DNA from: Octopus bimaculoides
Lineage: Eukaryota
Length of the DNA stretch: 64,000 nucleotides
Assembly: GCF_001194135.2 (NCBI RefSeq)
Contig: NC_068982.1
Coordinates: forward strand, 107,082,064-107,146,063
Direction: 5' to 3'
Shown here: in pieces, positions 29,157 through 61,612 of the stretch
Position numbering within the stretch: position 1 is the stretch's first letter
How the letters are laid out: the number at the start of each line of letters is the position of its first letter
Notes under the pieces: model-generated
Seen by the model: only the letters and a program-made list of their open reading frames with translations
Databases searched by the model: none
What the model was told of the DNA's origin: nothing
Position numbers and translations under genes: made by a program

Positions 29157-29330
29157 TTAAAGGAGTAATAAAGTCATGCAGAGAAGCCCTAAAGAAATTT
29201 CAATGACCAAATTTGAACCTCCATTAGTTGTAGTTACTTCAGGTTGTGGTGTTTTTAAAGTTGAGTTAGGTTTCTCTGTAGTCACTTGAAGTGCAAATTC
29301 TATAGGATAGTGGTCAGTGACCTTTTCAGC
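29157..29330 (-). CDS. DNase I-family gene, terminal exon (DHYP motif + S/T stalk + GPI-type signal)
   Basis: tttcttcttctttttcag acceptor, phase 0; AEKVTDHYPIEFALQVTTEKPNSTLKTPQPEVTTTNGGSNLVIEISLGLLCMTLLLL*. TDHYP corresponds to the SDHYP catalytic His motif. Confidence 0.93.
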   Translation of the reverse strand, partial: AEKVTDHYPIEFALQVTTEKPNSTLKTPQPEVTTTNGGSNLVIEISLGLLCMTLLLL

Positions 29331-31386
29331 CTGAAAAAGAAGAAGAAAGATTTGGAAATATGCAGTATGAAACCATTTTGTAAATTATTGATTAAACATA
29401 AAAGAATTTAGTTAATAATAAAAAAAAAAGATAATTCTAAAATCAAATGATTTAAAACAAGCTTGAAATAATATGAATATTGATTCTTAAATCAGGTATT
29501 TTGATGTGCTTTAATTAGCAACGTAAGCCTTAAGTACTGGAAATAAGGTATGATGTTGAAGCTTTGATTAAATTATCCCAAATTGTTCTATTGCCAACTC
29601 TGTGTACAAGAAAGGGAAAAAAAAAATTTTAAATAGAGTAAACTTCCTTCTTAGATTGAGTGAAAAAAAATTAAACCATGTTTTCCTCAAGAAAGCATTT
29701 GAGTGGTTCCAGCATAAAGATGTATGGATAACAAGAAAATACAGAATTATCTCTCATCTTTTCTGGTAAAAGAGCATTACTTTACCACTATTTTAGAGAG
29801 AAAACTGTCTTATACTTTATAAAACAATCAGAGTTCTGCAGATAACAGATGCAAGGAGTTACTTTTTATTCCAAGTCAACTTTGAATGAACAGTTTTATG
29901 ATTAGAAGTGTTCAGTCATGATTATCCCAGCTTTTTGTGACTACATTGTCCCATATGTGCTTTTAAAATGAGAGTGTGTGATTTAAGGGGGATTTGACTA
30001 CTACTTCTAGTAGGTCAAGGCTCTTTACTATTTGATGGTTAAAAGAATGAAATCAATTCTTTTAATTTCAGAAGAAGAAACAATGCCATGATCTTTGTAG
30101 GCCATGTTAAAATGTTCTTTCATGTGAATATCTTCACTAGAAACAATTATATTAGTATTTGGTGAAGAGATAAAAGCTCAAAATATTGCACAACCTTTAA
30201 TAAAAGTAACTGCATGGAAACATGAGCTGAAAGGGGCTTCGGGGAAGCTGTACTTATAGAAGAGAAATGAGTTGATTGAGATAAGTGCTTAGTGAAGGAT
30301 TGAGGAGTAAAACAGAGTGAGGGTGATAAGAGGAGAAGAAGCAAGAATTGACAATTTAGAGATGAGAAATTGTTTTGGGGATTTGGAAAATCACTGAAGA
30401 ATATAAATAGGTAAGGAAAGTAATTAGTGCAGACTATTCAAGGTGGTATCAGTAAAAAGAAACATTAATTTATATACAATGCCAACAACTCATTACTTCT
30501 AACACACGCATGTTAATGAAAATGTAAATCCATTTTGAGCAATAAATGTTAAGTTCAGAAGTTTTAGATAGAATCACACAAATTATATAAACACCTCCCA
30601 GTTTCAAAGTGCTATTTATTTTTATTTCTATCACAATTAGTGAACATTAGTACAGGTGGTTACAGGTTTCCAATGAGCCAAACGCTGGTTCACTGCATTT
30701 CAAGCTGTGAGTAACAGTTTGGAGCAGACAAATGTTACATGGGATTTCATTTGACATGCATCAGCCTTTCAATTTTTTTTTTGATGATGTTTACATCTTT
30801 TGCTGATATACACATGCAAGCGTGATATTCATGGAATATATAAGCAAGATAGGATCCTCAGGCTCCTCTTGTAAGGTAGGGACTGAGTAAGCATTGATTA
30901 TGATGACCTGTCCAAGGGCTCAAATTAAAATATTCTTAGTGGCAAGTAGATTAAAATGAATAATGATATGAATTCTTGAAAAGTTGTATAATTCACTATA
31001 TAGAACCAATATAATAATCCTAGTTTAGAACAGATATTACACTGTGACCCCTACCATATATTGATTATATTCTGTCCATTTCAAGTTAATTATGGAATGA
31101 ATAAGTTACAAACAAACAGTATTGATTATGATTTACTGCTTCAATTAATGTGTTGAGTTACATTGAGAGGTTTACCATTTTTAGTTAAGTACCTCACTTT
31201 CTAAATTCAAATATTACAGGGTCAATCTTTTTTTTTTGTCCATCCAGGATCAGTAAAAGAAGTGCATGTTTTAAAATAGAATCAAGCCAGTTAATTATAC
31301 CAAACCCCTACAAAGGAATCTTAGGTCTATTTCAAGCAAAAACAATATAATCAATATTTTAAGAAATGTAAAGCTTTATAACTCAC

Positions 31387-31480
31387 CATTTGTGCTGAAA
31401 GTTTATATTCTTTATCAAAATGGAAGACAGAACCAGCATCTTGAACTACATGTTTCAAATTGCTGCCAGTTATAATTGCC
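31387..31480 (-). CDS. DNase I-family gene, penultimate exon
   Basis: ttctttcacag acceptor and GTGAGT donor; 94 nt, phase 2 to 0; AIITGSNLKHVVQDAGSVFHFDKEYKLSAQM aligns with IVVAG..L...VVPGSA.PF.FQ..YGLS. Confidence 0.9.
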
Positions 31481-31559
31481 CTGTGAAAGAATACAGACAT
31501 TGAGTAAGAACAGATTATAAAAGTTGAAGTTACTTGTAAATTAGAAATATCTTGTTTAA

Positions 31560-32260
31560 CCCTTTTGATACCAGCCTGCCTGAAACCACTCTGTAGTACA
31601 AATGTCTTGTTTTCAAAAGTTCTGAATTAAAATCTTCCACCAAACTTAGTCACAATTTATGTTCCTAACACTAGCTTAATAATAACTAAGTTATTTTACT
31701 AAATTCTTTGTTATATTTAAAATTAATTGAAAGAATCACAGAGTATCATCATCATCATTTAATGTCCGTTTTCCATGTTGGCATGGGTTGGACGGTTTGA
31801 TTGAGGTCTGGAGAGCCAGTGGCTGCACCAGGCTCCAATCTGATCTGGCAATGTTTCTACAGCTGGATGCCCTTCCTAATGCCAACCACTCCGAGAGTGT
31901 AGTGGGTGCTTTTTATGTGCCACTGATACAGGAGCCAGTCAGGTGCGCCTGGCATTGATCACGTTCAGATAATGCTTTTTATGTGCCACCAGCACTGGGG
32001 TCAGTCAGGGGGTACTGGCATCGGCCATGTTCAGTTGGTGCTTTTTACGTGCCACTGGCTCAGGAGCCAGTCAAGCGGACCTAGTATTGACTGTGTTTGG
32101 ATGGTACTTTTTATGTGCTACCAGCACGGGAACCCATCACGGTACTGGCCACAGCTATGATATTGGTTCTACTTGACTCAACAGGTCTTCTCAAGCATAT
32201 CATATCACACGATGCATCAGGGGTATTCAGTATCTCAACAAAAATATGGTAACAAAAGGG
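31560..32260. mobile_element. TTAA-flanked piggyBac-type MITE interrupted by a family D insertion (about 31745-32230)
   Basis: TTAA at 31556-31559 and 32261-32264; TIR CCCTTTTGATACCA vs CCCTTTTGTTACCA (13/14). Confidence 0.8.
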
Positions 32261-33064
32261 TTAAGATATATATTAATAGTTGTTGAGAGCTCTGAATTTA
32301 TACCTCCAGATTTGTCTAAAATATCTAATAACAATAGAGATTATGCATCAGTATGTATATATGTGACCAAGAAAAATTTTCCTTTCACTTTCCCTAAATA
32401 AGTCAAAATTTACACATTCCCTAAAGCTGATTGCTTCACTGAAATAATGAAAGTAACTGACATTAGTTTATTAACTTGTTAACCCAACTATCTACTCTGA
32501 AGATATGTAAGTGTAAGACATGGAGAGAGAGAATTGTTCAAGAGGGAGATGAGACCTGGCTGCTCGACCTGACATAGATAGTAGCCAAAATTTTTACAAA
32601 TAGCATTCAGTTACTTCCAAATACACATGACAGTATTGTTACAACTGAAATGCCTTTCATAATAGCTTTGTTTGATTACGACTTATCTGTGTAAACACAG
32701 CAACAACAAAGTAATAAGTTTACATCAAGCCAATTGAGAAACGTCTTTGTCCAGACACTTGACTGACTAGACATAACTTCCAAATTTCTCTCAAATTATA
32801 CCTTATGACCTTAAATTAAATAAGGACACACTTTAAAAATGTAATTCTATACACAGAAACAGAAGGTTTATCTTGCAAGTTTTATGGAACCTTACAAGTA
32901 CCAGTGGCATGAAAAAAGCACCCAGTACACTCTGTAAAGTGATTGATATTAAGAAGAGTATCCAGTTTATATATATATATATATATATATATGCCATGAT
33001 TAATCGTTGACCAAACACCATTCAATTTTTTTTCTCCGTGTTTTTCTCCTTGTTTTCTCCGTAT

Positions 33065-33101
33065 TCTTTCTGTTGAAGAGCATAGCTCGAAACGTTAAAG
33101 A
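33065..33101 (+). ncRNA. degenerate minimal type I hammerhead-ribozyme-like motif in a probable Penelope terminal repeat (about 33020-33195)
   Basis: TCTTT-CTGTTGA-A-GAGC(ATA)GCTC-GAAA-CGTT-AAAGA: stem I 5 bp, stem II 4 bp, palindromic ACGT helix III; core A6>U and a GUU site. Confidence 0.45.
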
Positions 33102-33189
33102 CTTTCTCTATTCCCGAGCGTCAAACTAATACATCCTTTTGTTGTTTACACCACCTGTCCTCATCTGTTGTTTTTTTTCATACATTCTC

Positions 33190-33237
<48 letters not shown>

Positions 33238-34904
33238 ATATGTAACTACATAGAAACATATATGTATGTTCGTGTATTTCATGTTTTTTATTTGTCCTCC
33301 TCCACCATTTGACAGCTGGTGTAGGTTTATTATGTCCCTCTAACTTAGCAGTTCAACAAAAGATACTGATAAAATAAGTACCAGACTTGAAAATAAGGCC
33401 AAGAGTCAATCTGTTCAAATAAATCCTTCAAGACAGTGCCCCAGAATGGCCCAATGATAAATAAGTAAAAGGTAAAAAATAAACCATAAGCTTAAAGGCA
33501 ATAACACACCTTGTACTGTGAACAAAACTAAGAAATATTTTCATAAGAAAAGTGTGCCACATGGGAATAAATTGTTTTTATGTTTAAAAATAAAAGTTAT
33601 TAAAAATTTGTGCTGTGGAGATTTAATGATTTGCTAAAATGGGTAGGTACAATAAAATGTTTTGAAACAGCGGCCTGGTGTAGAGGCATGCAAATTGGCT
33701 AGTTTTCTTTTAGTAGCAATATAGTGAGATAAGGAGACAGTTGAATGGCTCACTATGGTTGAAAGGTCAATAGTTCATATCTCTTGTCATCATTGGCTTC
33801 AAAGACACTTAAATTTCAATGGTCCTTAGCTTTAATGACAATTTACTATTAAATTAAGCAGGAGCTAATATGCATTTAAACCTCTATCTATTAACTATGT
33901 ATTGTTCATGAAGAAGAAGTCTGAGAAATTTCCTTTCCCCAACTTCAGTTATTATTCTATGTGCCATAAAGTTAAGGACAGATAACTCCTTGTAAATAGT
34001 GTAGGCCGCTGAATAATTGAGGAGAGATTTACTAATATACAGAACTGAACTCATATTCTCCACTGAACAAAAGCTTCAGTCTCAACTCTGATAGCAATAG
34101 CAACAAGGATAAGCTCAAAGTTACTATCACACAATATGGTAACAGTAGTGAAATAAATAAAATATGTATCACACTGTAGCTGTGTAGTTAAATGCAACCT
34201 TCTTAATCATACAGCAATGACTGCGCTCTTTAACATGTGATCTACATATAATGACTGGAAGTGCAATCACCAGAACTGAAAATCAAAAAGAGAAAATATG
34301 TACACTGGAGTGGTCTCCACATCTTTTCTTCAGATAAGCTTGAAACCCAAGAATATTCCAGATTTCTAAAAAGAAACTGAAGCTTAGAGCATATAGCATT
34401 AAATGTCCTGCACAGATATATTAGAAGAAAAAATAAACAAGAGCACTCAGAGCGCAAACCTCTGCCAAGGCAACACCAACGTCCTCACAACAATTAGCTA
34501 GAGATGGCTTTTAAAATGAGAATATCCAAAATAAATTCAACTGCTCTCACAAACGAGAATACTAAAAATGAACCCGACAGCTCTCAGAAATTAAGTAAAA
34601 AACAGAAAAAAAAAATCCAGAATCCTTGTCCGGTACCAGATCAATCCAAAAATCAAATCAGTCTGTGCTAGTCACGATGCCAAACATCCCTGAAAGTTTC
34701 ATTTGAATCCATCCAGCAGTTTTTGAGATATCTGCTCCATGGACAAACAAACAAACAAACGTGACTGAAAACAATACCTCCGCCTTAGCGAAGGCAGAAG
34801 TAATAAATAGAGAGAGCACAGCATACAGAAATATAAGCCAAAGATTATCCTAAAGGTTTTTTTAGCAGGAATCATATAATTACCATTAGTCAAAATGGTA
34901 ATTA

Positions 34905-35118
34905 TATGAGCTGGCAGAAACGTTAGCATGCTGGGCAAAATGCTTAGCAGTATTTCATTTGTCTTTATGTTCTGAGTTCAAATTCCGCTGAAGTCGACTT
35001 TGCCTTTCATCCTTTCGGGTTCGATAAATTAAATACCAGTTGCATACTGGAGTTGATCTAATCAACTGGCCCCCCCTCCCCCAAAAATTTTGGGCCTTGT
35101 GCCTAGAGTAGAAAAGAA
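34905..35118 (+). mobile_element. SINE family A
   Basis: Homologous to 585-760. Confidence 0.85.
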
Positions 35119-35162
35119 TTATATGACATGAAATGAAGGAAGATTACAAATTTAGTTAATCT

Positions 35163-35580
35163 TTTAATCTTTTACTTGTTTCAGTCATTATACTGTGGCC
35201 ATGTTGTGGCATTACCTTGAAGTAGTTAAATCAAATGACTTGGCCCCAGTAGGTATTTTTTAAAGCCTGGTACTTATTCTATCAGTCTTTTTTACCAAAC
35301 TGCTAAATTATGAGGGACGTAAATGCACCAACACTGGTTGTCCAGCAGTGTTGAGGGACAAACACAGACACGCACGCGCACACACACACACACACACACA
35401 TGCACGAAACACATAATTATGACGGGCTATTTTTAGTTTCCATCTACCAAATCCACTCACAAGGCTTTGGTCGGCATGACGCTATAGTAGAAGACACTTG
35501 CCTAAGGTGTCACACAGTAGGACTGAACCTAGAACTGTATGGTTGAGAAGCAAACTTTTTGCCTCGCAGCCACGCTTGCA
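35163..35580 (-). mobile_element. SINE family B, full length, diverged
   Basis: Colinear with 56956-57348. Confidence 0.85.
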
Positions 35581-35641
35581 TTTTGAGAAAAAGAAAGTTC
35601 AATAGACCTGAAATTGGGAAAAATTAATTAGTCATACTCAC

Positions 35642-35903
35642 TGGTCATAAGTACAGCTGTTATCCTCAACTGTTGTATCATCAGAGATCAACCACTTGTA
35701 ACTCATATCCTTCACAATCAGTAGATTTTTTTTGCATTCATCATTGCAGTATTGACAATCTGTGTTCAGTGTACCCATGATGACAAAATTTTTCTGACTA
35801 ACTTTCTTCTCTAGCTCATTTATTACTTCAACAAGTGAATCCATTTCCTCCTTTACATTATCTGAATCCACGTGAATACCAATGATTGTCACTTCAGTTA
35901 TAT
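35642..35903 (-). CDS. DNase I-family gene, central exon (His134, GxxN and YD motifs)
   Basis: ttcctatttttcag acceptor and GTGAGT donor; 262 nt, phase 1 to 2; ITEVTIIGIHVDSDNVKEEMDSL...MGTLNTDCQY...WLISDDTT...CTYD aligns with bovine FAIVALH..SDAVAEINSL...MGDFNADCSY...WLIPDSADTT...CAYDR. Confidence 0.95.
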
Positions 35904-36074
35904 CTGAAAAATAGGAAGAAAATCATAACTTAAAGAGAGGGAGAAAGTGTGTGTGTGTCTGTTATTTAATTTCTAATTTACTAACATTTATTCAGTTTGC
36001 ATGCATGTATGTGTGTGTATGTATGGATGCATGCATGCATGCATATATGTATGTATGTATGTATGTATGTATTG

Positions 36075-36900
36075 AATTTCCTGAGGAAGAATTTAGGCAA
36101 GTGTTGGTTGGTTGAAATTAGTCCAGTTTTTTCATTTAAATTTGTGGTTAGAGTAGCAAATATGGCAGAGTAGCTTTACTCTAATAGAGAACTTGCACTA
36201 CTTTGATATGTTCCTAAATGTCTGTACTTTATCTAGCAGTCAATGGGATGCTTGCATTTTCTCCTTTGTATCTGACTTACTTCTATGTTTTGAAAGTGCT
36301 ATGTTGTTTTCCATGTTGGAATGATGAAATGAACTGTTGTGCTAGATGCAGATAACTTTTGAAGTTCTCTAGAGGTCTTGTATAGCTTATTGATATGTTA
36401 CCTATTGACACATCAACATGTCGTATAATGTCTTTGTCTAGGCCTTTATCCTTTAAGAGACAAAGGTTTATATTTCAGCAGTATTTGCTTGTTTGCAAAC
36501 TTTTTATATTGCTGGCTTTTGTGGCACTAGACTTGTTTTTCATGCAGTTTAGCTCATCTTGATGCTGTTTCTGCAGAACAACTAATAGAATTTATTACTG
36601 CTTAAGTAAAGTTTCTCTGATTCAGGAGAGAAAATGCTTTGCAATTCTGGTTTTCCCGTTGATAATGTATTGTGGATTATACCAAATAATATTCCTCTTC
36701 TAAATAGTTTTAGGTTCACAGCTAGAGGATTCCACCACGTACTTGATTGCTCCTGTGTATCAGGTACTTGAGAGTGCTTAACTTTCAGTGGGGAAGGCTT
36801 GTGTAGGATCAGCCACACTTTTTAGAAATGCTGATAGAAGAAAGTTGATGCAGTTGTTTGCCATAAACTCAACGAACAACAAGATTTTATATTAGAATTG
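36075..36900 (-). mobile_element. Penelope-like element remnant (old)
   Basis: KLSTLKYLIHRS (S.IHRA-like) and ISYTRPLENFKKL (YRRP.NL-like); many stops. Confidence 0.5.
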
Positions 36901-37382
36901 AAAATGTGCACTTAGGTACCAAACTAGAAATATCTTAAACCCTTGTTCATACATACACACATACATACAACACACACACACACATATATATATGTAATCC
37001 ATTACAGCACTTACCTAGTGTACCTAATCATTTCAATCACCTGTGAACTAAACCTCCATACTTATATATATATAACTCTAACTCTTCGAAACGCTCAGTT
37101 TTAGAATGGTGGCAGCTGATGAAGGAAATGTTCTCTATGTGGCCTGTGTGTTTTCTGTACTCTGTTTATCATTTTGTCCACATTTTTTTTTTGCAACGTC
37201 CTGTACCCAGATATGCATCTATATATACATGTAGATGTAGGTATGTACATACATGTACGTATATATGCATATACTCATTTATTATTTGTATTATATATAT
37301 ATTTACATATCATGTAAATACATGCCCATTAACTCATGTGAGTTCATCTGCCCCTTGATGGATGTTTTTTCATCCTGTAGGG

Positions 37383-39694
37383 CAGTGATTTTCAAACCAT
37401 GTGCTGCAGCGTACTGGTGCACCTCAAAAAAGTAAGATTATATTTCAAAATATGAAAAATACAAACCAAAATTCACTAGAAAGTTCAAATATAAATGTCA
37501 AAGTGGCAAAAAACTAAATACTAAGTTCTAAACTAGGAATGAGAGGTGGGTGATTGTGTCATTCAATTCATTTAGGCTAATTATGGTATGACAGTGTTAT
37601 CCAATTTTCAATCTGAAATTTCATAAGGATATGAACTAAATTAGCATCAAATTGATGCCTCATGGACATATTCAGAGCATGACTATGCTTCAGTTTATCT
37701 CAGCCATAGCCTCAGCAGTTTCCTTTTAATAATAAATGTGAAAAATAAATTATTGAATTAAAATATACAATGTTGAAATAAATCTTTTAATACATCCTCA
37801 CATATTGCGGCTGTATTTCAATTTATTTCATTCATATAGTGGCATAAATTTTCATCTTTTCAATTAATTTTGAAAGACTTCTCAAAAGAGTCTGATAATA
37901 TGTGATACGCTGCCTCTTTTCACAGCTCACTGGCCACTTGTCTCAGCCTCAGTTTGACTCTGGTAGTAATCTGTGCTCTTTGTGCAAAACAATTCATATT
38001 AACAGACTAAATTACCCATAAAATGGAAAAGTTTAAGATGAAACATAACCGTAACGATTATGAATCTGAAAGTAAACGTTCGCCAAAAGCAAATAAGTGT
38101 AGTGATAATAATGCGAAAGCTCGACCCAGTCATAAAGCAAGAAATAAGCAAGATTCCGCTCTCAAATAATACAATCCACAGGAGAATTATGAATTTATCT
38201 GCTGATATAGAGGAAAATGTATAGAACAAACTTTAGAACTTAGAATTTGCTGTACAGGTTGATGAATCAACTGATATTAGCAACAAAGCACAATTACTTA
38301 CAATTATTTGCTTTATTGATGGTAACCAAATCACAAATCAGTTCTTTTGTTGTGAAGAAATGCCACTCACTACAAGAGGTCAAGATATTTTTGACATTTT
38401 ATTTGCCTACCACGGAAAATGGAATTTATCCTGGAATTCCTGTGTTGGAATATGTTCTGATGGGGCACCATCTGTGATAGGCTTTATGAAAGGTTTTGTA
38501 TCACTCATACAACAGCAAAACCCTAATGTTATATGTACTCTTTGATTCCTACATAGCGGGGTACTAGTTTCAAAAACAATACCAGTTGAGTTAAAGCAAG
38601 TATTAAACCAAGTTGTATTAAAAGTAGGCTGTTGAAGTGTTGCTTATTTGAACAAATTTGTGTTGATCTGGATTCCCAGTACAAGTGCTTACTTTTACAC
38701 ACAAAAGTCAGATGACTCTCAAAAGGCAAGGTGTAGCATTGCATACATGAACTCCAAAAGGAATTGCATGCATTTTTTAAAGAAGAAAAACATGAACACT
38801 TCTTGGAATATCTACAATGTGAATTTTGGGTTTCCAAGCTGGAATATGTAACAGAGATATTTGAACAACTTAATAACATCAACACAAGTATGCAAAATAA
38901 AGATGAAAACATTCTCACTTCGACAGATAAGCTGGTTTCATTTAAAAACTAAGTTGTAATTTGGAAAAATAGAGCTAAAGGTGCTAAGTTTGAAATGCTT
39001 CCCTTAAAACGTAAAAGCTACATAAAAGAAATGACTCCTATTGTATTTGAACATTTGACAAATTCGGAAGAAAAAATAAACTTTTATTTTCCGTCATTGA
39101 ACACAGAAGAATATGATTGGGTTCGAAATCCCTTCATAAAATTCCATCTAATATTGGTCTCAATATATGTGAAGAAGAGGCATTGACATCTATATCCAAT
39201 GATTGTGGACTTAAAATCAAATATGCTGTGCTGAGTTAACTATTGATACATTTTGGATTGCTATTATAGGAGAATACCCCTCAGTAGTAAAAAAACGCTT
39301 TATCCGTTTTGATGCAGTTTTCCACATCATATTTATGTGAGTTGGGATTTTCAACCCTCAGTAACATCAAATCCAAAAAAGAAAGAGGCTTCATTGCATC
39401 GAAGAAGAAATGAGGGTTTGTCTTTCTCAAATACGTCCCAATATTGAATACATTTCCAAAAAACATCAAGTGCATGTTTCTTATTGATAACTTTGCTTCA
39501 TATATTGAATAAAAAGTAAGTATGTGCAATTTTTCTGTATTTTTAACTATCTATTTATTACTTTATTGTTTATGCTATGCTAATATGTATAAAGTCCCTT
39601 TTGAATAAATTTTAGAATTTATGTACAAAGTGAACCAAAATATCTTGACTTCTTGTAAGGTGTGCCATGAGTAAAAAAAGTTTGGCAACCACTG
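37383..39694 (+). mobile_element. hAT DNA transposon (Buster/Charlie/SPIN-type), 2312 bp, defective transposase
   Basis: TIR CAGTGATTTTCAAAC / CAGTGGTTGCCAAAC; TSD CTGTAGGG / CTGTAGGT; KIPLSNNTIHRRI, VDESTD, SDGA, HTKVR.LSKGK and STSYLCELGFS motifs, broken by stops and frameshifts. Confidence 0.93.
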
Positions 39695-40075
39695 CTGTAG
39701 GTTGTTGAAAAACCACAGTACTCACCAAGCAGTTCTGGTGATGTTACAAGTTTAGTCACCGTGCAATGGGTAGTACTCTGTTACATGTTACCAAGAGCAC
39801 TCAAGAGTGACAAAGCATACATACTCATACATACGTACATACATACATACATACATACACACATACACTCTTGTTGAGATGTATAAATGGAAGAAAGACA
39901 ATACATGTAGTAGAGGTTATTGGTTCAGTTGAAGTTCATGGTCAACATCGATTCATCACTGACATTTTTACTACTTGTGACCCATCAAGCAGCAAAAGTA
40001 TTGTTGATGCTATAAGTCAGATTGTGTGTGTGTGTATGTGTGTATGTGCATGTGTGTGTGTTTGTGTGTGCGTGT

Positions 40076-40232: not shown

Positions 40233-40333
40233 CATCATAGGGCAATGAAAATGTACCAACAAGCGGAGGTCTGCGAAACAAATTTGCTGTTTTCTTAGAA
40301 AGAGTTTGAGTATTGTACTTTATGTGTTTCTTC
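40233..40333 (-). CDS. DNase I-family gene, internal exon
   Basis: ttcttttacttttccag acceptor and GTAAGT donor; 101 nt, phase 2 to 1; KKHIKYNTQTLSKKTANLFRRPPLVGTFSLPYD aligns with SFSREPAVVKFSS. Confidence 0.88.
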
Positions 40334-43690: not shown

Positions 43691-44077
43691 TGGAGGCGCA
43701 ATGGCCCAGTGGTTAGGGCAGCGGACTTGCGGTCATAGGATCGTGGTTTCAATTCCCAGATCGGGCGTTGTGAATGTTTATTGAGTGAAAACACCTAAAG
43801 CTCCAGGTGGCTCCAGGAGAGGATGGTGGCGAACCCTGCTGTACTCTTTCACCACAACTTTCTCTCGCTCTTACTTCCAGTTTTCGTTGTGCCTGTAATT
43901 CAAAGGGTCAGCCTTGTCACACTGTGTCATGCTGAATATCCCCAAGAACTACGTTAAGGGTACACATGTCTGTGGAGTGCTCAGCCACTTGCACGTTAAT
44001 TTCACGAGCAGACTGTTCCATTGATCAGATCGACTGGAACCCTTGACGTCGTAAGCGACGGAATGCCAACAAAAAAA
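43691..44077 (+). mobile_element. SINE family C, full length, 12-bp TSD
   Basis: Colinear with 17502-17873; TATAATGTTACT at 43677-43688 and 44078-44089. Confidence 0.9.
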
Positions 44078-49159: not shown

Positions 49160-49520
49160 ATCCATTACTTATTTCATTCACTGGACTGTGGCCATGCTGA
49201 GGCATTGCCTTAAAGGGTTTAGTCGAACAAATTGACCTCAGGGCTTTCATGTTTTAAAACTTGGCACTTATTTTATAGCCTCTTTTGCTGAACCGATAAG
49301 TTATGGGATGTGAACAAACCAGTGCAGGTTATCAAGCAGTGGTAGGGGACAAGCACAAGCACACATAGATATACATATACATGCGTACACAACGGGCTTC
49401 ATTCAGTTTCCGTCTACCAAATCCACTCACAAAGTTTTGGTCGGTCTGAGGCTATAGTGGAAGACACTGTCCCAAGGTACCATGTAGTGGGACTAAACTC
49501 ATGGCCATATAGATGGGAAG
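49160..49520 (-). mobile_element. SINE family B, diverged
   Basis: Colinear with 56956-57348. Confidence 0.8.
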
Positions 49521-50046
49521 CAAGTCTTGCTTTTTTTGTTTTTAAGACTGGCAGTTTCCTATGCACAGTAGTCATTCCTCTCTGCACCACTGATGTTGTA
49601 CAGGGAAAAGGCTCCAGCTTTAGCTGAGTTCCAGTGAAATCGCAGGCATGGCTGTCAGAACAGATATCATAAGGTCAATCCACTGCTCCAGGCAGTCACT
49701 TTTTTATGATCTTGAAAGGATGAGAGGCAAAATTGACCTCAGTGGGATCTGAACTCAAAACGCAAAGATTCAAAACAAATACCGTGTGGTATTCTATCTA
49801 ACTTGTTAACGATTCTTCAAATTCTGCCGCCTTAACTACTTAATGAAAAATAGAAATACATAATTGATCAGCAACGTGGGAAAAAACCCAAGCCATATCA
49901 ATAATTTGATGAATGGATCCACTTGAAGCCAGGTGCTAGAAACCTGTACAATTTTAATGACATTACTGGTGTATTATAAAATACATGCCTCCTTATAATG
50001 AAAAATTACCATATCAATGTCCACTATTATAATTAGTATTATCGGA

Positions 50047-51398: not shown

Positions 51399-51412
51399 GC
51401 GCCATCTAGTGG
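51399..51412 (-). promoter_or_regulatory. CTCF consensus core CCACTAGATGGCGC
   Basis: Exact match to the CCACYAGRKGGCRS pattern inside a CpG-richer patch. Confidence 0.5.
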
Positions 51413-51889
51413 CGAGCTGTTTTAAACAGCCTTCGTCAAGGGAGGTAACTGCGCCTACAATCCTTTAATCGCTTATTCATGAAAGGAAACGAGTATGGTT
51501 CTTTAGTTTCTTTAAGATAGCAGTGTAACTAAAGTGTGTGCCGCCCGTGTTTGCCGTTCCATCCAGGCTTCCTAACCGATACAGATTCCTGCAGCAGACT
51601 CAAAATTGTCACCCCATAAAAGGGGATATCTCCACCCCGTCCTTGCAACCTACTTATGTCACTGTTTTAGGGCTACTGAGACTGGAAGGGAGGAAATTAT
51701 TCTCAAACTGAAATCCTGGTCTCCATGCTGGCAACAGAGTGAACTCCACTAAAGGTATCTGAAGACCAAGTGGAAGTGGGTGTTAAACGGAGGGACTGAT
51801 TATGTCTATCACCTAAGAACGCAAACAACAAGAAAAATACAGCAAGGTATCTTCTCGACTGATACTCTAACCATTCTATCCATTCGCTC

Positions 51890-52025
51890 TTCATTTGACT
51901 GGTATTTTCATTTTATTAATCTCGAAAGATGAAAGGCGAATTTGAGCTCGGCAGGGTTTGAACTCAGGCTGGAACAAATAGTGCAAGGCATTTTGTTTTA
52001 GGCTCTAACGACTTCGCCGATTCAC
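51890..52025 (-). mobile_element. SINE family A, diverged
   Basis: gaaagatgaaaggcgaatttgagctcggcagggtttgaactcag is the reverse of the family A core. Confidence 0.7.
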
Positions 52026-52984
52026 TTCTCAGGTTGAAAAGATATTTAGACGAAGAAAAAGGAGAAAGAAAAGGATGTGGAAGAGAAAAAAGAGGAGAAG
52101 GTGAACGAAAAGAAGAAGAGAAGAAAAAGAAGAGAAGAAGAAGAGGGGGAGGGACCAAATCTTTGCAAGTTCTCCCAAACTGATGAAAATTAAGTGAATG
52201 ATGCCTAGACTGAACATTTGTAGGTCAATGACTGCTTTAAAAAAAGTGTGGGTGGAAAGAAAATGCTTGGACCAAGTAGCGGAATTAAAATGTCCAATGT
52301 TAAATTTTCTTTTGAACAAAACAAGCATCATTGGTTTTAAAAGCAATAATTTGAAATAATTATGATCAGCTGATATGTTTTCTTTTTTTTTTTTCTCTCA
52401 AACAACAGTGACAGTGTTGTCAACAACAACCCTAACACTAACAATGATTACAGCAACAAGCAAAACAGTTTAAAAAGAATTTTCTTTATCTGCATGGGTT
52501 ATTCGCACGTGATTGGGTTACTATTTGTTATTTACAATAGCTTTTATTAGGGAGATGTAGTTGAATATTATTCTTATTTACATGTGACAAAATACGAATA
52601 AAGTAGTAAAGAGTATTCAATATGTTTCGTAGAGAAATGCTATTATTATTTTGAAATTTAGTTTTTCTCCATTACTTAAATTTTCACTCTGGGGAAACGT
52701 TCATCAGATGCCATATCTACAGCTTCCTTTTTTGAAATGCTTACGTAATTATCGTTGATATTTCGCATCTTACAGTCGGCTCATTTGTTTACATCTGGTT
52801 GATGAACTAAAGTTGTAAATTGCTGTCGTAGTGTGTCAGGTAGAATTTGTTTTTGTGACAACATTTTGACATTATCTCTATTCGTTTGTTTAAAGTATTA
52901 GTCTGTTTAACTATTATATGATATTTCTGTTTTGTGCAAGTTGCCATAATTATCTAACCATATTTAATATTATATCAGACATGG

Positions 52985-53195
52985 AAGTGGTAGGCCAATA
53001 GAATCGTTACTCCGCGGGACAAAATACTTAGCAGCATTTTTTTTCCGGTTTTACGTCCTGACTTCAAATAGCACTGACGTTGACTTTGCTTTCCACCCTC
53101 TCGGGATCGATAAAATAAGTACCAGTTGAGCTCTGGAGTTGATGTAATCAACTTATCCACTTCCCTCAAATTGCTGGCCTCGTGCCAAAATAAGA
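52985..53195 (+). mobile_element. SINE family A, diverged
   Basis: gaatcgttac...cttagcagcattt...gactttgctttccaccctctcgggatcgataaaataagtaccagttgag. Confidence 0.75.
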
Positions 53196-54612
53196 AACAA
53201 TATTATATCAAACATGGGCAATCTTTTTCGAGCAGTGGGCCGCATGAGATATGGCTCATCATAAGGCGGGTCGCACTCTTGAAAAAATTCAAGGTCATTT
53301 TTCGTTGAAAGTATCTCAGCCATTTTCACTATAGAAGACCAAAAATTTAAGCATTCGGCTTTAGAAATGAAGCAAAGTAAAGTTTTGTCAATTCCAAAAT
53401 AAGACAACGTTACGCAACACGTATAATGCTGTGCGGTACATACGTGTAGTTATAGCCGCTGATTTATCGCAAGAAATTGTTATTAGCGTTGAAAACAGAA
53501 ATTAAACATAAAATCAATAATTTTCATTCGTGTCCTGAGTAGAGATGCCAATTCAAGGCTCTTGAATGTTTGGAAGGTTCTAAATTGACTCTGAAGCATG
53601 TTGAAAATTATACGGATGACTGACAACGGCAAATGTTTGTACCCACAGCGCAACAGGCATTAATAAGTAAGGGAGGTTAGACAGACATTTAATTGTTATT
53701 CTCCTTTGACACCAGCTTCCCCACACCTCTTTGAGTGAGTCAGTGAACGAGAGAGAGAGAGAGAGAGAGAGAAAAGAAACAACATTTTAATAAACGTTAT
53801 TTTCCGTATGAAACATGAAACTCGACATGTCACTCAGAAAGCCAAACGGGCCGCAGTTTTCCTATGACTATTATATACGCTAACCACTTATTCTCAATAA
53901 CTGTATGTCTTAGCCTAATAGCAAAATTTCTGATGAAATTTTCAGCCGTTTGATAAAAAATTTTGGTATTTATCAGATGTAGGCCAGGAAGTGCAGGATG
54001 GAGGAGTTATCGTTCTACTTTGTACTCAATATCTTATAATTTTTATTTAGATTGAAGCTTTTCTTTTCGATCGAAATGTTCTATTTCAATTCTAATTACA
54101 CAACCTCGTTTCTCTATTATAGGCGAATAACTTTTTTTCTTTAATTCATTCAGCTTTTAACGATATTCAGAAGATTTATACTAAATTTATTTCTTCTGGT
54201 GAATTTGTAATCAGCGAAGATTTCAATATTTTTAACTTAATTTTTTCCCCCACAAATCTTTTGGTTCTTTCAGTTAGTGTTCCATAAATTTTCATTAAGC
54301 TTGCATTTTAATTAGCTGAATTGTTAACTTAAATTTATTCTTTTTCTTTTGCATTTCATATATTTCCGGTAATTTGGAAAGTTGCTTACGTCCTTCCAAT
54401 ACAGAAAAAGTACTCAGCATCTTACGTATAAAATACAAACCTTCGAGTTTATTAAATACATATAGTAAACCATTTAAATCCACATAAGAGAAAATATAAA
54501 TAATTGAACTCAAACTATATTTTTATCTATTAATTGTCATAGCTTTCGATCAAGTCATTCCACAATTATCAAATTGCTCCTTTAGTAGAAAGTGGGTTAT
54601 ACATCTTTAGAT

Positions 54613-54915
54613 TGTATACCTGACTTTCTACTATAAAATTAAAGAAATAGACGGAACGCTGAACTCCAGACTAAACAACTTAAACAACATTTATTTACTT
54701 GGTAAAACATATATATCTTTAGTTATACATCTTTAGAGGTGAGAATAACGAGCTGTCGAGTATAAGACCGAAAGATGTAGGGACAACTTTTAAACACACG
54801 TCCATGCTCAATCGCTGGCCAGCGAGAAAGAGAATGAATTGAGCGGGAAACGCTTGCTTGTTTTATTCTACGCATGCGTAAAACTACGCATGCGCAGACG
54901 TTACTACACTCCCTT
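54613..54915 (-). mobile_element. probable LTR (TGT...ACA, about 296 bp) preceded by a polypurine tract
   Basis: Minus strand AAGGGAG|TGTAGTAAC..., internal AATAAA, ends in TATACA; the 3' boundary is uncertain. Confidence 0.45.
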
Positions 54916-55559
54916 GACTAGATATTTGAACAAAAGAAACAGATCATAACACTATGTATGTATGTCATTATTCAGTTTTATTTCAAGATTTCTTGCCAAT
55001 AGAGAAAGAAGCGGTTTCTGTGTGTATGTATGTATTGCATAATTTTATGAAATTTATATTATTTTAAGCTACACATACACACATGCATGCATACATATAC
55101 ATTGAATGTAAGTTTTATTACAATTTTTCTTATATAGAATCTGTGCTGGGCAAAAAGAAAAAAAAACTTAGCGTGATGTTTTCTGTGATTAACCACTCAG
55201 TGTTCAAACTATCAGTCACATATATCTTATGTTTCTCTGAGAAATTCCTCATTGATGAAGGTGTATGTGTAATTAGAAAATGGTTTAGCGCTGCACTTGT
55301 GCATAACGATATTTTTTTCCGCAATTCGTTTGAGATGTTATCTTTGCTTCATAAATAATTGCTTTTTTACGCATCTTCCATTAAAAAGGACAAGTCTTTT
55401 TTGCATTACCAGGTGTATCACCATTGCAAGAATCGCAAAGTACTAAAAATTTCTGCAATCCTGAAGCGATGTAAATCAAGAACTCATTGTAATAATTAAC
55501 ATAAACATTTATTTACATGAAAGAAAATTATCGGGGAACTTTCATCTAATTCTTCCAAA

Positions 55560-55866
55560 TTCTTCAGTTAAAACTGTATTGAAACCTTTTGTAGGGATTT
55601 TTTTTATCACAGCAACTGGTCGCACACCACAAGGTTTAACGGTACCTACTGAAGCAAGCCAGCACGCTGGCAGCATTACCACAGGCAATGACGAGCCTAA
55701 GGCGTTGAGAAAATCAAGCGCCCTCACAGGCATCACCTGACATCTCGGCGAGGCGAGCTGCCAACGTTGACAAGGACTTCGCGGCTAGTGGCTCAGTCCC
55801 TCCGAACGTCTCAAACGCCACAGGCTGGAATTGATAATTCACTGTCAGGTCCCGATACTTCAGGGC
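55560..55866 (-). mobile_element. CRE-like non-LTR element, C-terminal endonuclease remnant
   Basis: ALKYRDLTVNYQFQPVAFETFGG...LSTLAARLAEMSGD.CEGA*FSQRLRLVIACGNAASVLAS; this frame is not in the ORF track. Confidence 0.65.
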
Positions 55867-56955
55867 ATTTTTTTTTCTGACATTAGAACTTTTGGAGAAG
55901 GATATAATATTTGACTAATATTTTATTTCATTGATTCCAGAAGGATGAAAAGCAAAGTCAATCTTAAAGATATTTGAACTCAGAACGTAAAAAAGAAAAA
56001 CTTACCATATTTGATGGCATAAAAGACACCCGGGCATACCGGACGCCCTCCAATACTGAGGTAAAGAGGAGACATAATTTCGCATATAGGACACAGGGTG
56101 AGGTTTTGAAGCATCTTTTTCTTAAAAGAAAAAGGGGACTTCTTATATGTCATCAAATACGATAACTTGAAATTGCAAGGTATTCTGCCAATTCTGCCCA
56201 AATCACCGAATTCATTCTATCCCTCTACTGCTGCAGTTTTCTCCACCATTGTTGCTTTCAAGTTAATAGGTTTCTTAACTTGGCATAAAGACGTAAATTT
56301 ACAGAGCAGGGCGTCTACTTCTGATATACAACAAGTACTTATCTCGGTGGCGTTTGATCACATAACATTTCGTAATCAAAAACTGTGAAATATTAGTTCG
56401 GTACAATGCTGCTTCTTCCTTCTCAGCATAATTGGTACTTATTTTTTCGATCTCTGAGGAATATGAAATTAGAGCATATACGTTGCTAATCAAGGTGCAT
56501 TTCTATTTCTATCATCTACTGTCCTCTCGCTTTAAATTAAAATTTGTAATTCATAACTATTGTTAATCGATGCATATGGTGACGGCTTTATTGGATCAAA
56601 CAGGTGTATTAGCAACTCTGTATTAGAAAGCCTATTAAATGTTAAACACCATAAATAACAAAAGTCTTTATCAACATCTAACGAGATTAATTAAGTAAAA
56701 TTTAAAAGAAACTTTCGTAAAATTGTTTTTATTTATAGTTATTGATAACGAATTATAAAGGGGCTTAACATTAATTCAGCACACGGAATTGTCAGCCAGT
56801 CAAGGCATCATCTGGAAAGTGAACCAGAGAAAATTGAACCGTAGGAGTACTTAAAAACACATGAGAAACACTTTGATGGAGGAGTGTGGTACTGTGACAA
56901 CGGATGGACTTAGGACACTGATCATGGAATGAGATATGTGATGCGTCTTTGCATT

Positions 56956-57348
56956 TTTTACTCTTTTACTTGTTTCAGTCATTTGACTGCGGCCATGCTG
57001 GAGCACCGCCTTTAGTCGAGCAAATCGACCCCAGGACTTATTTTTTGGAAGCCTAGTACTTATTCTATCGGTCTCTTTTGCCGAACCGCTAAGTTACGGG
57101 GACGTAAACACACCACCATCGGTTGTCAAGCGATGTTGTGGGGGACAAACACAGACACACAAACATATACAACACATACATATACATATATACGATAGGC
57201 TTCTTTCAGTTTCCGTCTACCAAATCCACTCACAAGGCTTTGGTCGGCCCGAGGCTATAGTAGAAGACACTTGCCCAAGGTGCCACGCAGTGGGAATGAA
57301 CCCGGAACCATGTGGCTGGTAAGCAAGCTACTTACCACACAGCCACTC
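56956..57348 (-). mobile_element. SINE family B, full length, young-looking
   Basis: tRNA-like head GAGTGGCTGTGTGGTAAGTAG...GGTTCATTCCC, internal (CA/TA)n, tail gtaaaagagtaaaa. Confidence 0.9.
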
Positions 57349-59361
57349 AGTTATCTTCCAGGCATATTGCTTTGAGTTTTCTATTCTAACGCTTTGACGT
57401 TTTTATGGTGAACCTGTATATTTTCCTTTTATAATTGTCCCATTTTATTTATACTTGTATCAAATTTTATATAAAACTGCAGTGAGTCAGGAAAGATCTA
57501 TTTTGTTGTCGTGGCATTGTTCAGGGCTGGATCTGTTTAAATACAAATGGCAGTGATCTGCCTTAGTAGTGAAACGGCAGTTTCAAGTCAGTTGGTGAAC
57601 AGACGGCCTAGAGGTAATATCTCTTTCTTTGAAATGCAACGATTTTTGCGTTCACCACCAATTTCACGGAACTCACTTGAATAATATCAGCTACAACTCT
57701 GCTTCAAAATGTGCGGTACATTCTAGTTCTTATTAACTTACAACAGCTTCTACATAACACTTCTGTGTAAGAAGTAAGTCATGAGATTTTTCCAGTCTCG
57801 CATATACGTGTAGATGATTCGCATAAACCTGCAGTTTAATCATTGTTACTACTTGCCAACATTCGTTTTATTAACATAAAGTTTTCAATGTTTCGTTGTA
57901 AATGAGCTGCCTTCTGACATTCTTTATACGCGCTTATCAAAAGCACACTGGAATAGACTCTCTCACGAATACTCTTCATACATTAAATCACAGAACACTC
58001 GCGCCAAATTAGTGACCACACACTAAAAAAATTAACAGGGAACAGCCAACATTTTTTACCACCCACCGTATTGGATTTTCGGGGTCCTTGTTTCTTTTCA
58101 ATCAACATTTCGAGTTCAATAACTCGTTAAAATCTGCAAGCACTCTATTTTAACTATAAATTAATTTGCATTTTGAGATTTGTTTTAGAAGTGCAAATCT
58201 TATGGCGATTCCATTGTTTTTATCTCAGTACGGTCTTGGAGAAAATAAACCATTAATTAAAATACTTTAATTTGTTTGAAGTATTTTCCACGGAACTAGA
58301 GTGTTCAGTTAGTAAACAAAAGTTGTTTTGTGCCTTGTACGTGATTTTGTCTATTTGCTACGAAATAAAAAAAAAAACTGAACGAACATCTCCTACGTGT
58401 AGTGATTCTATAATTTTTGTCGAGGGTTGTAACTCCAGGTTGGCCTTGATTAAGCGAGTCAATGATCAAAGGCATTTTAGCTATAACCATCGATTTTTTT
58501 TCCAAAATTTGTGTCGCCGCATTATATCAATAATCAATGAGAATAAGGTGAATTTTTAAGTAGTCGACCAGCTTCCTCGTATTGCCACGTAAAAATTTCA
58601 ACGAGCTAACGGGGAACCTGATAAGTTGAGGACTTATCAATGAATTTTATTCATAAGAAATATATTAGAAAGACGGCCATCCCCTCTCAAGAGGTTAAAT
58701 CAATAATAAATGAGTTATACATCTGGTACGTATGTAAATATGCTGCTGAAACTCAATGACCTGAAGTTATTCAAGGATTTTTTTTTTAATGAATGTGTAG
58801 CACATCAAATCTGAGTGTTGTAACATGTCAACAGTCTTTTTTTTCGCAAACTAAATCGTCGACTCGATTACAATTCTTAGAGTTTATTATACATCACATT
58901 CGACGCGCCTGCAAATTCGATTGTGGAAGAGGGTTAGGCCTCAGCAAATTCATTTGCTCATTACGCATTATACGACGACTGGAGCTACATGAGCTAAAGA
59001 AGGTTCCTCTACATGGACACTCGATCTATTAGAACTAGTAGTCAAATATCCTTGAAACTTCTCTCTATCATTATAGAAGGACAATACTGGAAAATGTTCT
59101 TCATACGTAAAAAAAGATAAGATAGTTACAACTAGGACATCTTTGATCACAGATCTGCTCAACTAGAGAATAAACAATAACAGCAATAAAACCTTCAGCG
59201 GTAACTGTACAAATGAACATATTACAATCCTAAAACCAAACATCTCCCTAAAACTGTATTTCTAATCTTTCACTGTTATATGTATACCAGTATAACTACA
59301 GCTCAACCCATAACGATTATAGTAATGTTACATGTCACCTATTTACTTTCACTAGCAAAGT

Positions 59362-59662
59362 TGTTGTTGTTGCCACTCCGTCGCTTACGACGTCGAAGGT
59401 TCCACTTGATCCGATCAACGGAACAGCCTGCTCGTGAAATTAACGTGCAAGTGGCTGAGCACTCCACAGACACGTGTACCCTTAACGTAGTTCTCGGGGA
59501 TATTCAGCGTGACACAATGTGACAAGGCTGGCCCTTTGAAATACAGGTACAACAGAAACAGGAAGAAAGAGTGAGAGAAAGTTGTGGTGAAAGAGTACAG
59601 CAGGGTTCGCCACCATCCTCTGCCGGAGCCTCGTGGAGCTTTAGGTGTTTTCGCTCAATAAA
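59362..59662 (-). mobile_element. SINE family C, 5'-truncated
   Basis: Reverse complement of about 17590-17873; TSD-like CACTAGCAAAGT / CACTGGCAAAGT. Confidence 0.88.
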
Positions 59663-60403
59663 CACTGGCAAAGTAGTATTATACTAATATACACGTGACT
59701 TTTGAAATCTGACAGAGCGGCACGCTGACAGGAAATACCTTAGAGTATTTAGATTTGTCCTTCTACATTATACATTCAAATGCGATTGGATTCGAGTTTG
59801 GTTTTCATCTACTCGAGGTCGTTAAAATAAGTACTAGTAAAAATACTAAGATCGGCTCAATCAACTATAGTCCTCCCCAATAGTGACTCTAGAATTATAC
59901 CAATGTAAGAAATATACTTCCAAGATGTTTCTTATCCCAATGCAGTCTAATATTGATTTTATACAATCTGTAGTCGATACAATAAGAGCTAGTAATGGAT
60001 AAGTAGTTTGATTAAATTTTAAGGTACAAAATAATTTTATCAGAAAACATCATAAATGAACATATGTGACGGATGAAAAAATGTGCTGAATTTAATTTCT
60101 TCAGACGATACCAATCAAAGAATATAAGACACAAAGCGTCAACAGTTATTTTAGGGTTTAATCCATTAAAAACCTAAAACATATTTTGTTAATAAATCTA
60201 TCAAAAGAACTATTTCATGAAGGCGAACTTGTAAAATGGACTGAAAGTAAATAAGACCGCAAAGAAGTACCACTCGACTTGTATCTAAGAATGAGGTAAA
60301 AATATGAAATGGTTGAATGAAAAAAAAAGTATCTACACCATACAAGTCTGTGTGTCTCTTGGAAGGTTAGTTTACACTATTTGTCCACAGAGAAGCGTAT
60401 TAT

Positions 60404-60470
<67 letters not shown>

Positions 60471-60682
60471 CTTTTCCACTCTAAGTACAAGGTCCGAAAT
60501 TTTGGGGGAGGGGGCCAGTCGATTAGATCGCCCCTAGTACGCAACTGCTACTTAATTTATCGACCCCGAAAGGATGAAAGGCAAAGTCGACCTCAGCGGA
60601 ATTTGAGCTCAGGACATAAAGACAGACGAAATATCGTTTGGTATTTCGCCCGGCGTGCTAACGTTTCTGCCAGCTCGCCGCC
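60471..60682 (-). mobile_element. SINE family A
   Basis: Reverse complement of 585-760; source of ORFs 60304-60537 and 60381-60686. Confidence 0.88.
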
Positions 60683-61543
60683 TTAATATACATATATAAA
60701 GAGAGAATGAGGGATGGTATAATACTGGCTTTCACTTCATGCACATCATGTCGGATCCTTGCTAGCGTCGAATTTCGAAATCAAAAGGAGATCCGCAAGT
60801 CTTCGATTGATGTAAATGTCTTAAATACCTACAGGAGATATCAAGTGAAAGCTACATGTTCGGTCTATTTACATGTTGTGAGACGCGCAAATTAACTTAT
60901 TCTACAACATTTATTTGGTCAATGGTGCCTTCAAATCATAACATCGGAGGAAGCGAATGGATTACAGAATTGTTACACATTTCTATATATCATAACATGG
61001 ATTGCACAACAGAGTATGAATTGCATAACATTGTATGAGATATGGAATAAATATATTGTCCGTATACGAAAATAATTGTAATGTCCATTTGACTTCTTTA
61101 CTCATTTGAATTATTACTCTTATATGTGTGTATATATTAACACACACACATACATATACAGGACGAAGCTGAAGACGTGTTTTGTTGGTCTCATTATCTT
61201 TGATGTGGCACACACACACATACGCATACGCGCACGCGCACACACACACACACACACCACTAAAAAAATTAAAGGTTAAACACTGCTTCAACATCACCTA
61301 TTTATTTAATTTCCAAACTATTGGTGAGACAATTATAAAAAGTATCTTTATCATTAACCCTTGTTCATCATGTTAGGAATATAAATAGATGAGATAAGAG
61401 TATGACTAAAAAAAAAAAGAGACTGAAACAAAAGACAAAAAAAAAAAAGAAAAAAGAAGGGGTGGTTCACATATTTTATGAAGTTAACTTTTTTTTCCAA
61501 TGTTGACTAATATCATTGACAAACTGAATTTTGGATAGTTTAC

Positions 61544-61612
61544 CTGTAAAGGAAGCCATATTGTTCTTTATCGTCTCCAAGAGGTTTACTGAGTTTGTAG
61601 CCAAAGTTTTCT
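61544..61612 (-). CDS. DNase I-family gene, most 5' exon found in the window (E78 exon)
   Basis: atcttttatttttcag acceptor and GTAAAC donor; 69 nt, phase 2 to 2; ENFGYKLSKPLGDDKEQYGFLY(R) aligns with TYHYVVSEPLGRNSYKERYLFLFR. Confidence 0.88.

Follow-up and report, generated by a model that had tools for sequence, protein, structure and literature searches.

A DNase I-family gene conserved in octopods with a substituted catalytic aspartate: a candidate surface-tethered pseudo-nuclease

The window analysed here is a stretch of 64,000 nucleotides from Octopus bimaculoides (RefSeq assembly GCF_001194135.2, contig NC_068982.1, positions 107,082,064 to 107,146,063 of the forward strand), and the gene of interest within it is a member of the deoxyribonuclease (DNase) I family in which a catalytic, metal-binding aspartate, Asp168, is replaced by threonine (active-site residues are numbered as in bovine DNase I throughout). 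The gene is read from the minus strand, and its last five coding exons lie within positions 29157-61612. Coding exon 3, the first within the window, is found at 61544..61612 (69 nt; ...RENFGYKLSKPLGDDKEQYGFLYR) and carries E78; exon 4, at 40233..40333 (101 nt; KKHIKYNTQTLSKKTANLFRRPPLVGTFSLPYD), carries R111; and exon 5, at 35642..35903 (262 nt), contains H134, D136, the GTLNTDC motif, N170, a CxYCxxxC cysteine motif, C209 and the YDQ motif with D212. Exon 6 follows at 31387..31480 (94 nt; (Q)AIITGSNLKHVVQDAGSVFHFDKEYKLSAQM), and the last coding exon of the glycosylphosphatidylinositol (GPI)-type isoform, at 29157..29330 (174 nt including the TAA stop), encodes T250-D251-H252, a Ser/Thr/Pro-rich stalk and a C-terminal signal, with an AATAAA after it on the same strand (29122-29117). 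All internal borders are AG/GT, with polypyrimidine tracts, and the spliced exons give 232 codons and a stop, free of internal stops. A scan by a REP-type motif did not bring out the second exon, as the octopod sequence reads RRPP. The original prediction, made from the letters of the DNA, had proposed precisely these five minus-strand exons, with canonical splice sites, phases 2,2,1,2,0 and a product of 232 residues, and its codon positions are also exact: E78 (GAA, 61564-61566), H134 (CAC, 35872-35874), T168 (ACA, 35770-35772), D212 (GAC, 35644-35646) and H252 (CAC, 29310-29312).

The 232-residue product is as predicted, but it represents only the C-terminal part of a larger protein, being 100% identical to residues 85-316 of XP_014772757.1 (P0001; UniProt A0A0L8HGK6). 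The full protein has 316 residues, and the window covers its C-terminal three quarters; the first 84 residues of P0001, which include the signal peptide, N7 and position 39, are encoded by the two first coding exons, located upstream on the minus strand at positions past 64000 and so not part of the window. The gene had been thought hidden, yet it is already annotated, in RefSeq under the name "deoxyribonuclease gamma [Octopus bimaculoides]" as well as in UniProt. Its orthologue in Argonauta hians is a seven-exon gene with the same exon lengths of 69, 101, 262 and 94 nt and the same phases of 2,2,1,2,0, and full-length orthologous proteins are present in O. sinensis and O. vulgaris, where the genes span 103-118 kb.

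The C-terminus (...TTEKPNSTLKTPQPEVTTTNGGSNLVIEISLGLLCMTLLLL, then the stop) has a stalk rich in Ser, Thr and Pro as well as small residues, and it closes with a hydrophobic stretch that no cytoplasmic tail follows; AlphaFold2 predicts a helix at residues 298-315. On inspection, the end of the protein (...TTTNGGSNLVIEISLGLLCMTLLLL) has the pattern of a GPI signal, a type of ending that is kept in the orthologues. The candidate attachment signal itself (NGGSNLVIEISLGLLCMTLLLL, encoded at 29160..29225 on the minus strand) combines small residues in the omega region, a short spacer and a hydrophobic end, and equivalent hydrophobic tails occur in Argonauta, Sepia and other decapodiform orthologues, so the appearance of the C-terminus agrees with what had been predicted. 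By this pattern the octopus protein is a candidate for GPI anchoring. Such anchoring is not unusual in the family, since mammalian DNase1L1 (DNaseX) is a GPI-anchored membrane DNase of macrophages and muscle (PMC13649258), and this precedent makes a surface-tethered family member plausible. DNaseX resembles the octopus protein in that a hydrophobic C-terminal signal of GPI type comes after its DNase I-family domain, but it is catalytically active and keeps D168 and E39, neither of which the octopus protein retains. The cephalopod tail, moreover, is found on a separate clade, cephalopod-specific among the sampled relatives (the best solved relative being DNase1L3), and was probably acquired independently of DNASE1L1.

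Unlike DNaseX, the octopus gene also appears to encode a soluble isoform by means of an alternative last exon. A donor (GTAACT) at 29237, internal to the last exon, can join an alternative 3′ coding exon at 28514..28627 (minus strand; VTNVTNKCLGKEFLKRFQNIHTEFYNLIEIQTKVVMK), where an acceptor precedes an open frame whose stop is directly followed by AATAAA (28512-28507). The alternative exon exchanges the GPI-type signal for a hydrophilic tail (VTNVTNKCLGKEF...VVMK) that matches the C-terminus of the O. vulgaris isoform P0004, and the open frame is conserved between both species. This makes a soluble isoform likely, and the gene probably yields both tethered and soluble forms of the protein.

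Similarity to DNases is well beyond chance. In phmmer searches against the PDB, human DNase1L3 (7kiu) is matched at E=1e-40 and bovine and human DNase I at about 1e-33, with residues 26-274 covered, and an exhaustive HMMER search of 1.84 billion representatives returned 1579 relatives at E<=0.001. The AlphaFold2 model, built on a 69-sequence alignment, has a mean predicted local distance difference test (pLDDT) score of 89.6 and a predicted template modelling (pTM) score of 0.83, and when it is compared with the PDB by Foldseek, the first ten places all go to DNase1L3 or DNase I structures (target TM 0.87-0.92, root-mean-square deviation 1.8-2.7 Å); other enzymes of the endonuclease/exonuclease/phosphatase (EEP) superfamily, including Nocturnin, ANGEL2 and TDP2, rank far lower. 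The comparison of an AlphaFold model with DNase I that had been proposed for this gene thus gave a confident fold with the expected structural neighbours. The proposed HMMER check with PF03372 (Exo_endo_phos) turned out differently: the octopod proteins P0001, P0002 and P0003 have no match to this profile even at E<=10, although the gathering cutoff of 24.5 is passed both by the decapodiform orthologues (34-38 bits) and by the canonical octopod paralogue (45 bits). Family membership therefore rests on the phmmer searches against the PDB and on the predicted fold, and judged by these the octopus protein belongs to the DNase I family of the EEP superfamily, as had been proposed.

Compared with the vertebrate members of the family (DNASE1 and DNASE1L3, or DNase gamma; PDB 7kiu, 4awn, 1dnk and 2dnj), the octopus protein is likewise secretory and has the same fold (TM about 0.9), and it is about 30% identical to them across the entire domain. 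N7, E78, H134, N170, D212, H252, R111, Y175 and Y211 are common to both, as is the C173-C209 disulfide. The octopus protein differs in the replacement of D168 by Thr, E39 by Gln, S250 by Thr and R213 by Gln, in the deletion of Y76, in a shortened Ca2+ site I loop and replaced acidic residues at Ca2+ site II, and in an extra pair of cysteines (CxYCxxxC). It also has no counterpart of the C-terminal basic domain of DNase1L3, and the RefSeq label 'deoxyribonuclease gamma' is a matter of best-hit naming, not of orthology.

The central change is that at position 168, where ACA (35770..35772, minus strand) replaces the codon of the catalytic Asp in the DNase alignment. In phmmer alignments to three solved DNases, GTLNTDC falls on GDFNA(D/G)C, and the identity of the flanking G167, N170 and C173 leaves no ambiguity in its placement. 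When the 148 closest relatives were aligned to a bovine-numbered profile (166 domains, 162 of them aligned at this position), position 168 was found to be Asp in 157 domains, Asn in 1 and Thr in 4, and the four Thr cases are the orthologues of all four octopods, namely O. bimaculoides, O. sinensis, O. vulgaris and A. hians. Octopus and Argonauta agree in the ACA codon, where decapodiforms have GAT, which argues that D168T is not an assembly error; the substitution read from the window, with its ACA codon, is therefore upheld, being repeated in Argonauta and present as Thr in the O. sinensis and O. vulgaris proteins. That the Thr codon might nevertheless be a sequencing or assembly artefact, or the exon chain a product of chance, has a negligible probability in our estimate. 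The window does contain six assembly gaps (runs of N at 1348-1922, 3951-4060, 7159-7733, 10658-11499, 13698-14272 and 22649-22956), but all are downstream of the 3′ end of the gene and 0/6 fall inside 29157-61612; the ACA codon recurs in the independent Argonauta assembly, the proteins of two further species have Thr, and the similarity to DNases at E=1e-40 speaks against a chance chain. For Thr168 itself an artefactual origin is excluded by four independent genomes.

The functional weight of this position is known from DNase I, where single mutations of Glu39, Asp168 or Asp212 lead to very low activity, and these three residues are 91-100% conserved across DNase I, 1L1, 1L2 and 1L3 (PMC2987838). 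Position 39 is changed as well, to Gln, in the three Octopus species (VFLQQIKG in O. bimaculoides, read from P0001 as this part is off the window), while Argonauta retains the Glu (VFMQEIQG). S250 has become Thr in 4/4 octopod orthologues, and of the four only O. bimaculoides has kept the Asp at position 251, which is Val in O. sinensis and O. vulgaris (P0003/P0006) and Gly in Argonauta (P0002). Among other positions, O. sinensis and O. vulgaris have Phe in place of Y211, the Y76 position is lost from the octopod proteins through a two-residue deletion in exon 3, R41 is replaced by Lys or Gln and G12 by Asn; and, with the Ca2+ sites defined as in PMC2987838, octopods have a site I loop shortened by three residues and, in exon 4, other residues in place of the acidic ones at site II. 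Of the complete metal and catalytic set (N7, E39, E78, H134, D168, N170, D212, D251, H252), O. bimaculoides has thus kept all but D168 and E39, and the homology to DNases together with D168T and E39Q represents the combination of common descent and loss of essential residues by which pseudoenzymes are recognized. More broadly, 43 columns reach at least 85% conservation among 63 further members of the family; octopods deviate at 13/43, with 9/13 of these deviations found in octopods only, and decapodiforms deviate at 6/43.

What is retained is equally consistent, as N7, E78, H134, N170, D212, H252, R111 and the C173/C209 pair are invariant in 4/4 octopod orthologues; all of the residues that had been listed as retained from the window (E78, H134, N170, D212, H252 and C173/C209) are confirmed. 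The reported change of YDR to YDQ (R213Q) is also present, but it is not part of the lesion: YDQ occurs in catalytically complete decapodiform orthologues and in a few other family members, and was rejected as a component of the catalytic change on the ground that intact orthologues have it too. Two further features of exon 5 may be recorded here. An Asp two residues past H134 (35866-35868, minus strand; P0001 D153, position 136) is octopod-specific, in the context HVD in Octopus and HTD in Argonauta, with Met in the decapodiform orthologues and Ala in DNase I; it could act as a compensating ligand or as a DNA-repelling charge. The sequence CQYCNDEC (35734-35757, minus strand) has two extra cysteines after C173, and this CxYCxxxC arrangement, which among the 148 relatives is restricted to the octopod and decapodiform orthologues, may form an extra disulfide or a metal site specific to the clade. 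Net domain charge does not separate the octopod from the decapodiform proteins.

The nearest relatives outside the octopods are decapodiform proteins, P0010/P0156 and P0161, with 41-44% identity and known from RNA-seq assemblies only; P0161 is linked to the cuttlefish Sepia esculenta via RNA-seq run SRR20545816 (PMC10466719). They form a clade with the octopod proteins in neighbour-joining trees (bootstrap 196/200), in which the octopod stem is about 1.5x longer than the decapodiform stem, and the combination of CxYCxxxC, YDQ and a hydrophobic C-terminal tail is limited to these two groups among the 148 relatives. Like the octopod proteins, the decapodiform orthologues have the stalk; unlike them, they keep every catalytic and metal-binding residue (GDLN/GDMN, IQEI/IQEL, SDHYP and Y76), pass the PF03372 threshold and show a lower ratio of nonsynonymous to synonymous substitution rates (dN/dS, or omega; 0.16). 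On the alignment, with the decapodiform orthologues intact, the D168T lesion is octopod-specific and YDQ falls outside it. Canonical paralogues with the full catalytic set also exist in the octopods themselves, as O. bimaculoides has P0278, named "deoxyribonuclease-1" and secreted, and Argonauta has the secreted P0024, neither with a hydrophobic tail.

Degenerate catalytic domains are seen in other invertebrate DNase I-like proteins, among them P0007 (Seison, domain 3), P0009 (Lytechinus, domain 1), P0011 (domain 2), P0111 and P0075, in which N7, E39, H134, N170 or D251 is changed. Judged from these sequences, catalytic decay is a recurrent event within the DNase I family, and the tandem-domain proteins resemble the octopod protein in having a decayed site within a retained open reading frame. 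They differ from it in that most of the degenerate domains adjoin intact domains in the same polypeptide, whereas the octopod protein is a stand-alone single domain, and in that they carry other substitutions, D168T being unique to the octopod protein.

Codon alignments of the window, the Argonauta locus (L001) and the decapodiform transcripts were used to ask how the gene has been evolving. Between Octopus and Argonauta (223 codons) dN is 0.223 and dS 0.853, a value that is high but finite (octopod-decapodiform dS being saturated), and omega is 0.26 (bootstrap 95% interval 0.16-0.39), with no bootstrap replicate reaching 1; for the two decapodiforms over the same columns omega is 0.16 (0.09-0.26). 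The octopod gene is under purifying selection, perhaps somewhat relaxed. The original prediction had argued that the gene is not a pseudogene and had named dN/dS as a test, and both points are borne out by a ratio well under 1 and a reading frame that is intact in four genomes, that is, by retention under purifying selection in four orthologues, as is expected of a pseudoenzyme.

It is accordingly improbable, in our view, that the gene is simply decaying, either as a unitary pseudogene in the making or as an annotation laid over an untranscribed relic. Such decay would suit the erosion of the active site, the faster evolution of the octopod branch, the loss of a recognizable Pfam domain and the fact that transcript-derived octopod copies were not found in the protein collection searched. 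Purifying selection and the conserved exon structure nevertheless lead us to reject a pseudogene: the reading frame is intact, O. bimaculoides and Argonauta agree in exon lengths and phases and both have canonical splice sites, the products are full-length in O. sinensis and O. vulgaris, the fold is predicted with confidence, and even the frame of the alternative 3′ exon is open in both O. vulgaris and O. bimaculoides.

A more serious, though still doubtful, alternative is that the protein is a working hydrolase with altered chemistry, in which the retained pairs His134/Glu78 and His252/Asp212, together with N7 and N170, would cleave phosphodiesters or other phosphoesters with a different metal arrangement, metal dependence or substrate, T168 being either tolerated or compensated by the new Asp136. 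The strict conservation of N7, E78, H134, N170, D212, H252 and R111 in the four octopod orthologues, in spite of about 40% overall divergence, is in favour of this possibility, as are an omega only modestly above that of the decapodiforms, the octopod-specific acidic residue near H134 and the existence of EEP-fold enzymes with shifted substrates, of which Nocturnin, ANGEL2 and TDP2 are among the fold matches. On the other side, position 168 is Asp in 157 of 162 related domains and its mutation leaves DNase I with very low activity (PMC2987838), the Ca2+ site loops are degraded, and E39 and D251 were lost independently after D168T, which is to be expected once catalysis is no longer under selection and not if the metal site is needed.

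We therefore hold it rather probable, with moderate confidence, that the gene encodes an octopod-specific pseudo-nuclease, or a strongly attenuated nuclease, that has been kept for a non-catalytic role. Loss of D168 on the stem lineage, later losses of other ligands, erosion of Ca2+ and DNA-contact residues, purifying selection and the presence of an intact paralogue are together best explained in this way, and E39Q, S250T, D251V/G, the loss of Y76 and the degraded Ca2+ loops strengthen the case for a dead or attenuated enzyme; the loss of activity and the binding function are both inferred from the pattern of residues. Under this reading, a protein in which a signal peptide and a DNase I-fold domain are joined to a Ser/Thr/Pro stalk and a C-terminal signal of GPI type, and of which the alternative last exon probably gives a soluble form, belongs to a cephalopod-specific orthologue group whose cuttlefish-type members are complete and presumably active membrane-tethered DNases. 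The essential Asp168 and S250 would each have been replaced by Thr on the octopod stem, followed by independent losses of metal ligands (E39Q in Octopus, D251V in O. sinensis and O. vulgaris, D251G in Argonauta) and by the loss of DNA-contact and Ca2+-site residues, while purifying selection maintained the fold with its disulfide and its His/Glu/Asp pairs, as well as the reading frame. The Mg2+ site for DNA hydrolysis would then no longer be assembled, or DNA would be hydrolysed only very weakly; the protein, on the cell surface or in secretions, would have been kept because it binds something, and the canonical DNase-1 paralogue would carry out the actual digestion of DNA.

Several points weigh against this interpretation. 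N7, E78, H134, N170, D212 and H252, invariant as they are in the four octopod proteins, could mean that a catalytic or phosphate-binding function survives and that their role is not purely structural, and each species keeps some part of the site, Argonauta E39 and O. bimaculoides D251; D136 might be a substitute ligand. The octopod sample comprises four sequences from two families. In addition, no transcript-derived copy of the octopod orthologue was found in a collection of 15 billion proteins, where it is represented by genome annotations only, as against the Sepia orthologue, which was assembled from 112 RNA-seq samples (transcripts L004-L013), so that octopod expression may be low or restricted. 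The changes at DNA-contact positions (Y76 lost, R41K/Q, G12N and D136) also weaken the idea of a DNA-binding receptor. This last point bears on the most specific form of the pseudo-nuclease reading, a tentative one to which we give a fairly low probability, namely that a membrane-tethered DNase has been turned into a non-catalytic receptor or decoy on the outside of the cell, at its surface, for nucleic acid or for some other phosphorylated or polyanionic ligand, with the soluble form as a competitor.

The DNA around and within the gene is AT-rich and contains microsatellites, with (CA)n and (TA)n frequent, in addition to interspersed repeats and the six N runs listed above. The introns are full of interspersed repeats, including a 308-nt pair in opposite orientation (43768-44075 and 59364-59671, 90% identity) and a 163-nt family with three copies (35411-35573, 49381-49543 and 57184-57346). 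In the intron between the exons that border it at 40233 and 35903, at about 38020-39200 on the plus strand, a frameshifted chain of short open reading frames (...GICSDGAPSVIGFMKGFVSLIQQQNPNVI...) resembles a decayed transposase; these transposon-like frames have no Pfam match and their family is unconfirmed. An Rfam scan of the whole window gave no match.

Nuclease folds that have outlived their catalytic activity are known elsewhere. Fungal Ssd1, of the RNase II family, is a pseudonuclease (PMC8097288), and Pseudomonas Crc (PDB 4f1r, 8bvm) is a regulator with an EEP fold, indicating that this fold can be reused as a binding module. Both are similar to the octopod protein in that a nuclease fold remains under selection after the loss of catalytic residues and an active paralogue persists; they are intracellular RNA-binding regulators, whereas the octopod protein is predicted to be extracellular or tethered to the surface. 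Within the limits of the literature search, no published example of a DNase I-family pseudonuclease was found, and neither was a paper citing these accessions or an octopus 'deoxyribonuclease gamma'. The gene, its family, GPI-tethered DNases and pseudonucleases as a category are already known; what appears to be unreported is a stand-alone protein of this family whose metal site is degraded and which is conserved across octopods and has an intact decapodiform orthologue.

DNase I-family proteins are generally treated as uniformly active secreted or surface nucleases, and the comparative pattern described here is the textbook signature of a change from enzyme to pseudoenzyme. As a GPI-tethered DNase is already known and no long-standing question is opened, the importance of the finding is moderate. 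If confirmed, it would (i) correct the functional annotation of the gene, (ii) provide a natural matched pair, active in Sepia and inactive in Octopus, for the study of non-catalytic roles of a surface DNase fold and (iii) make the DNase I family one more enzyme family in which dead members are conserved. Should the receptor or decoy role prove true, the DNase I family would have its first stand-alone pseudo-nuclease, and octopods an innovation of their own in innate immunity or tissue biology.

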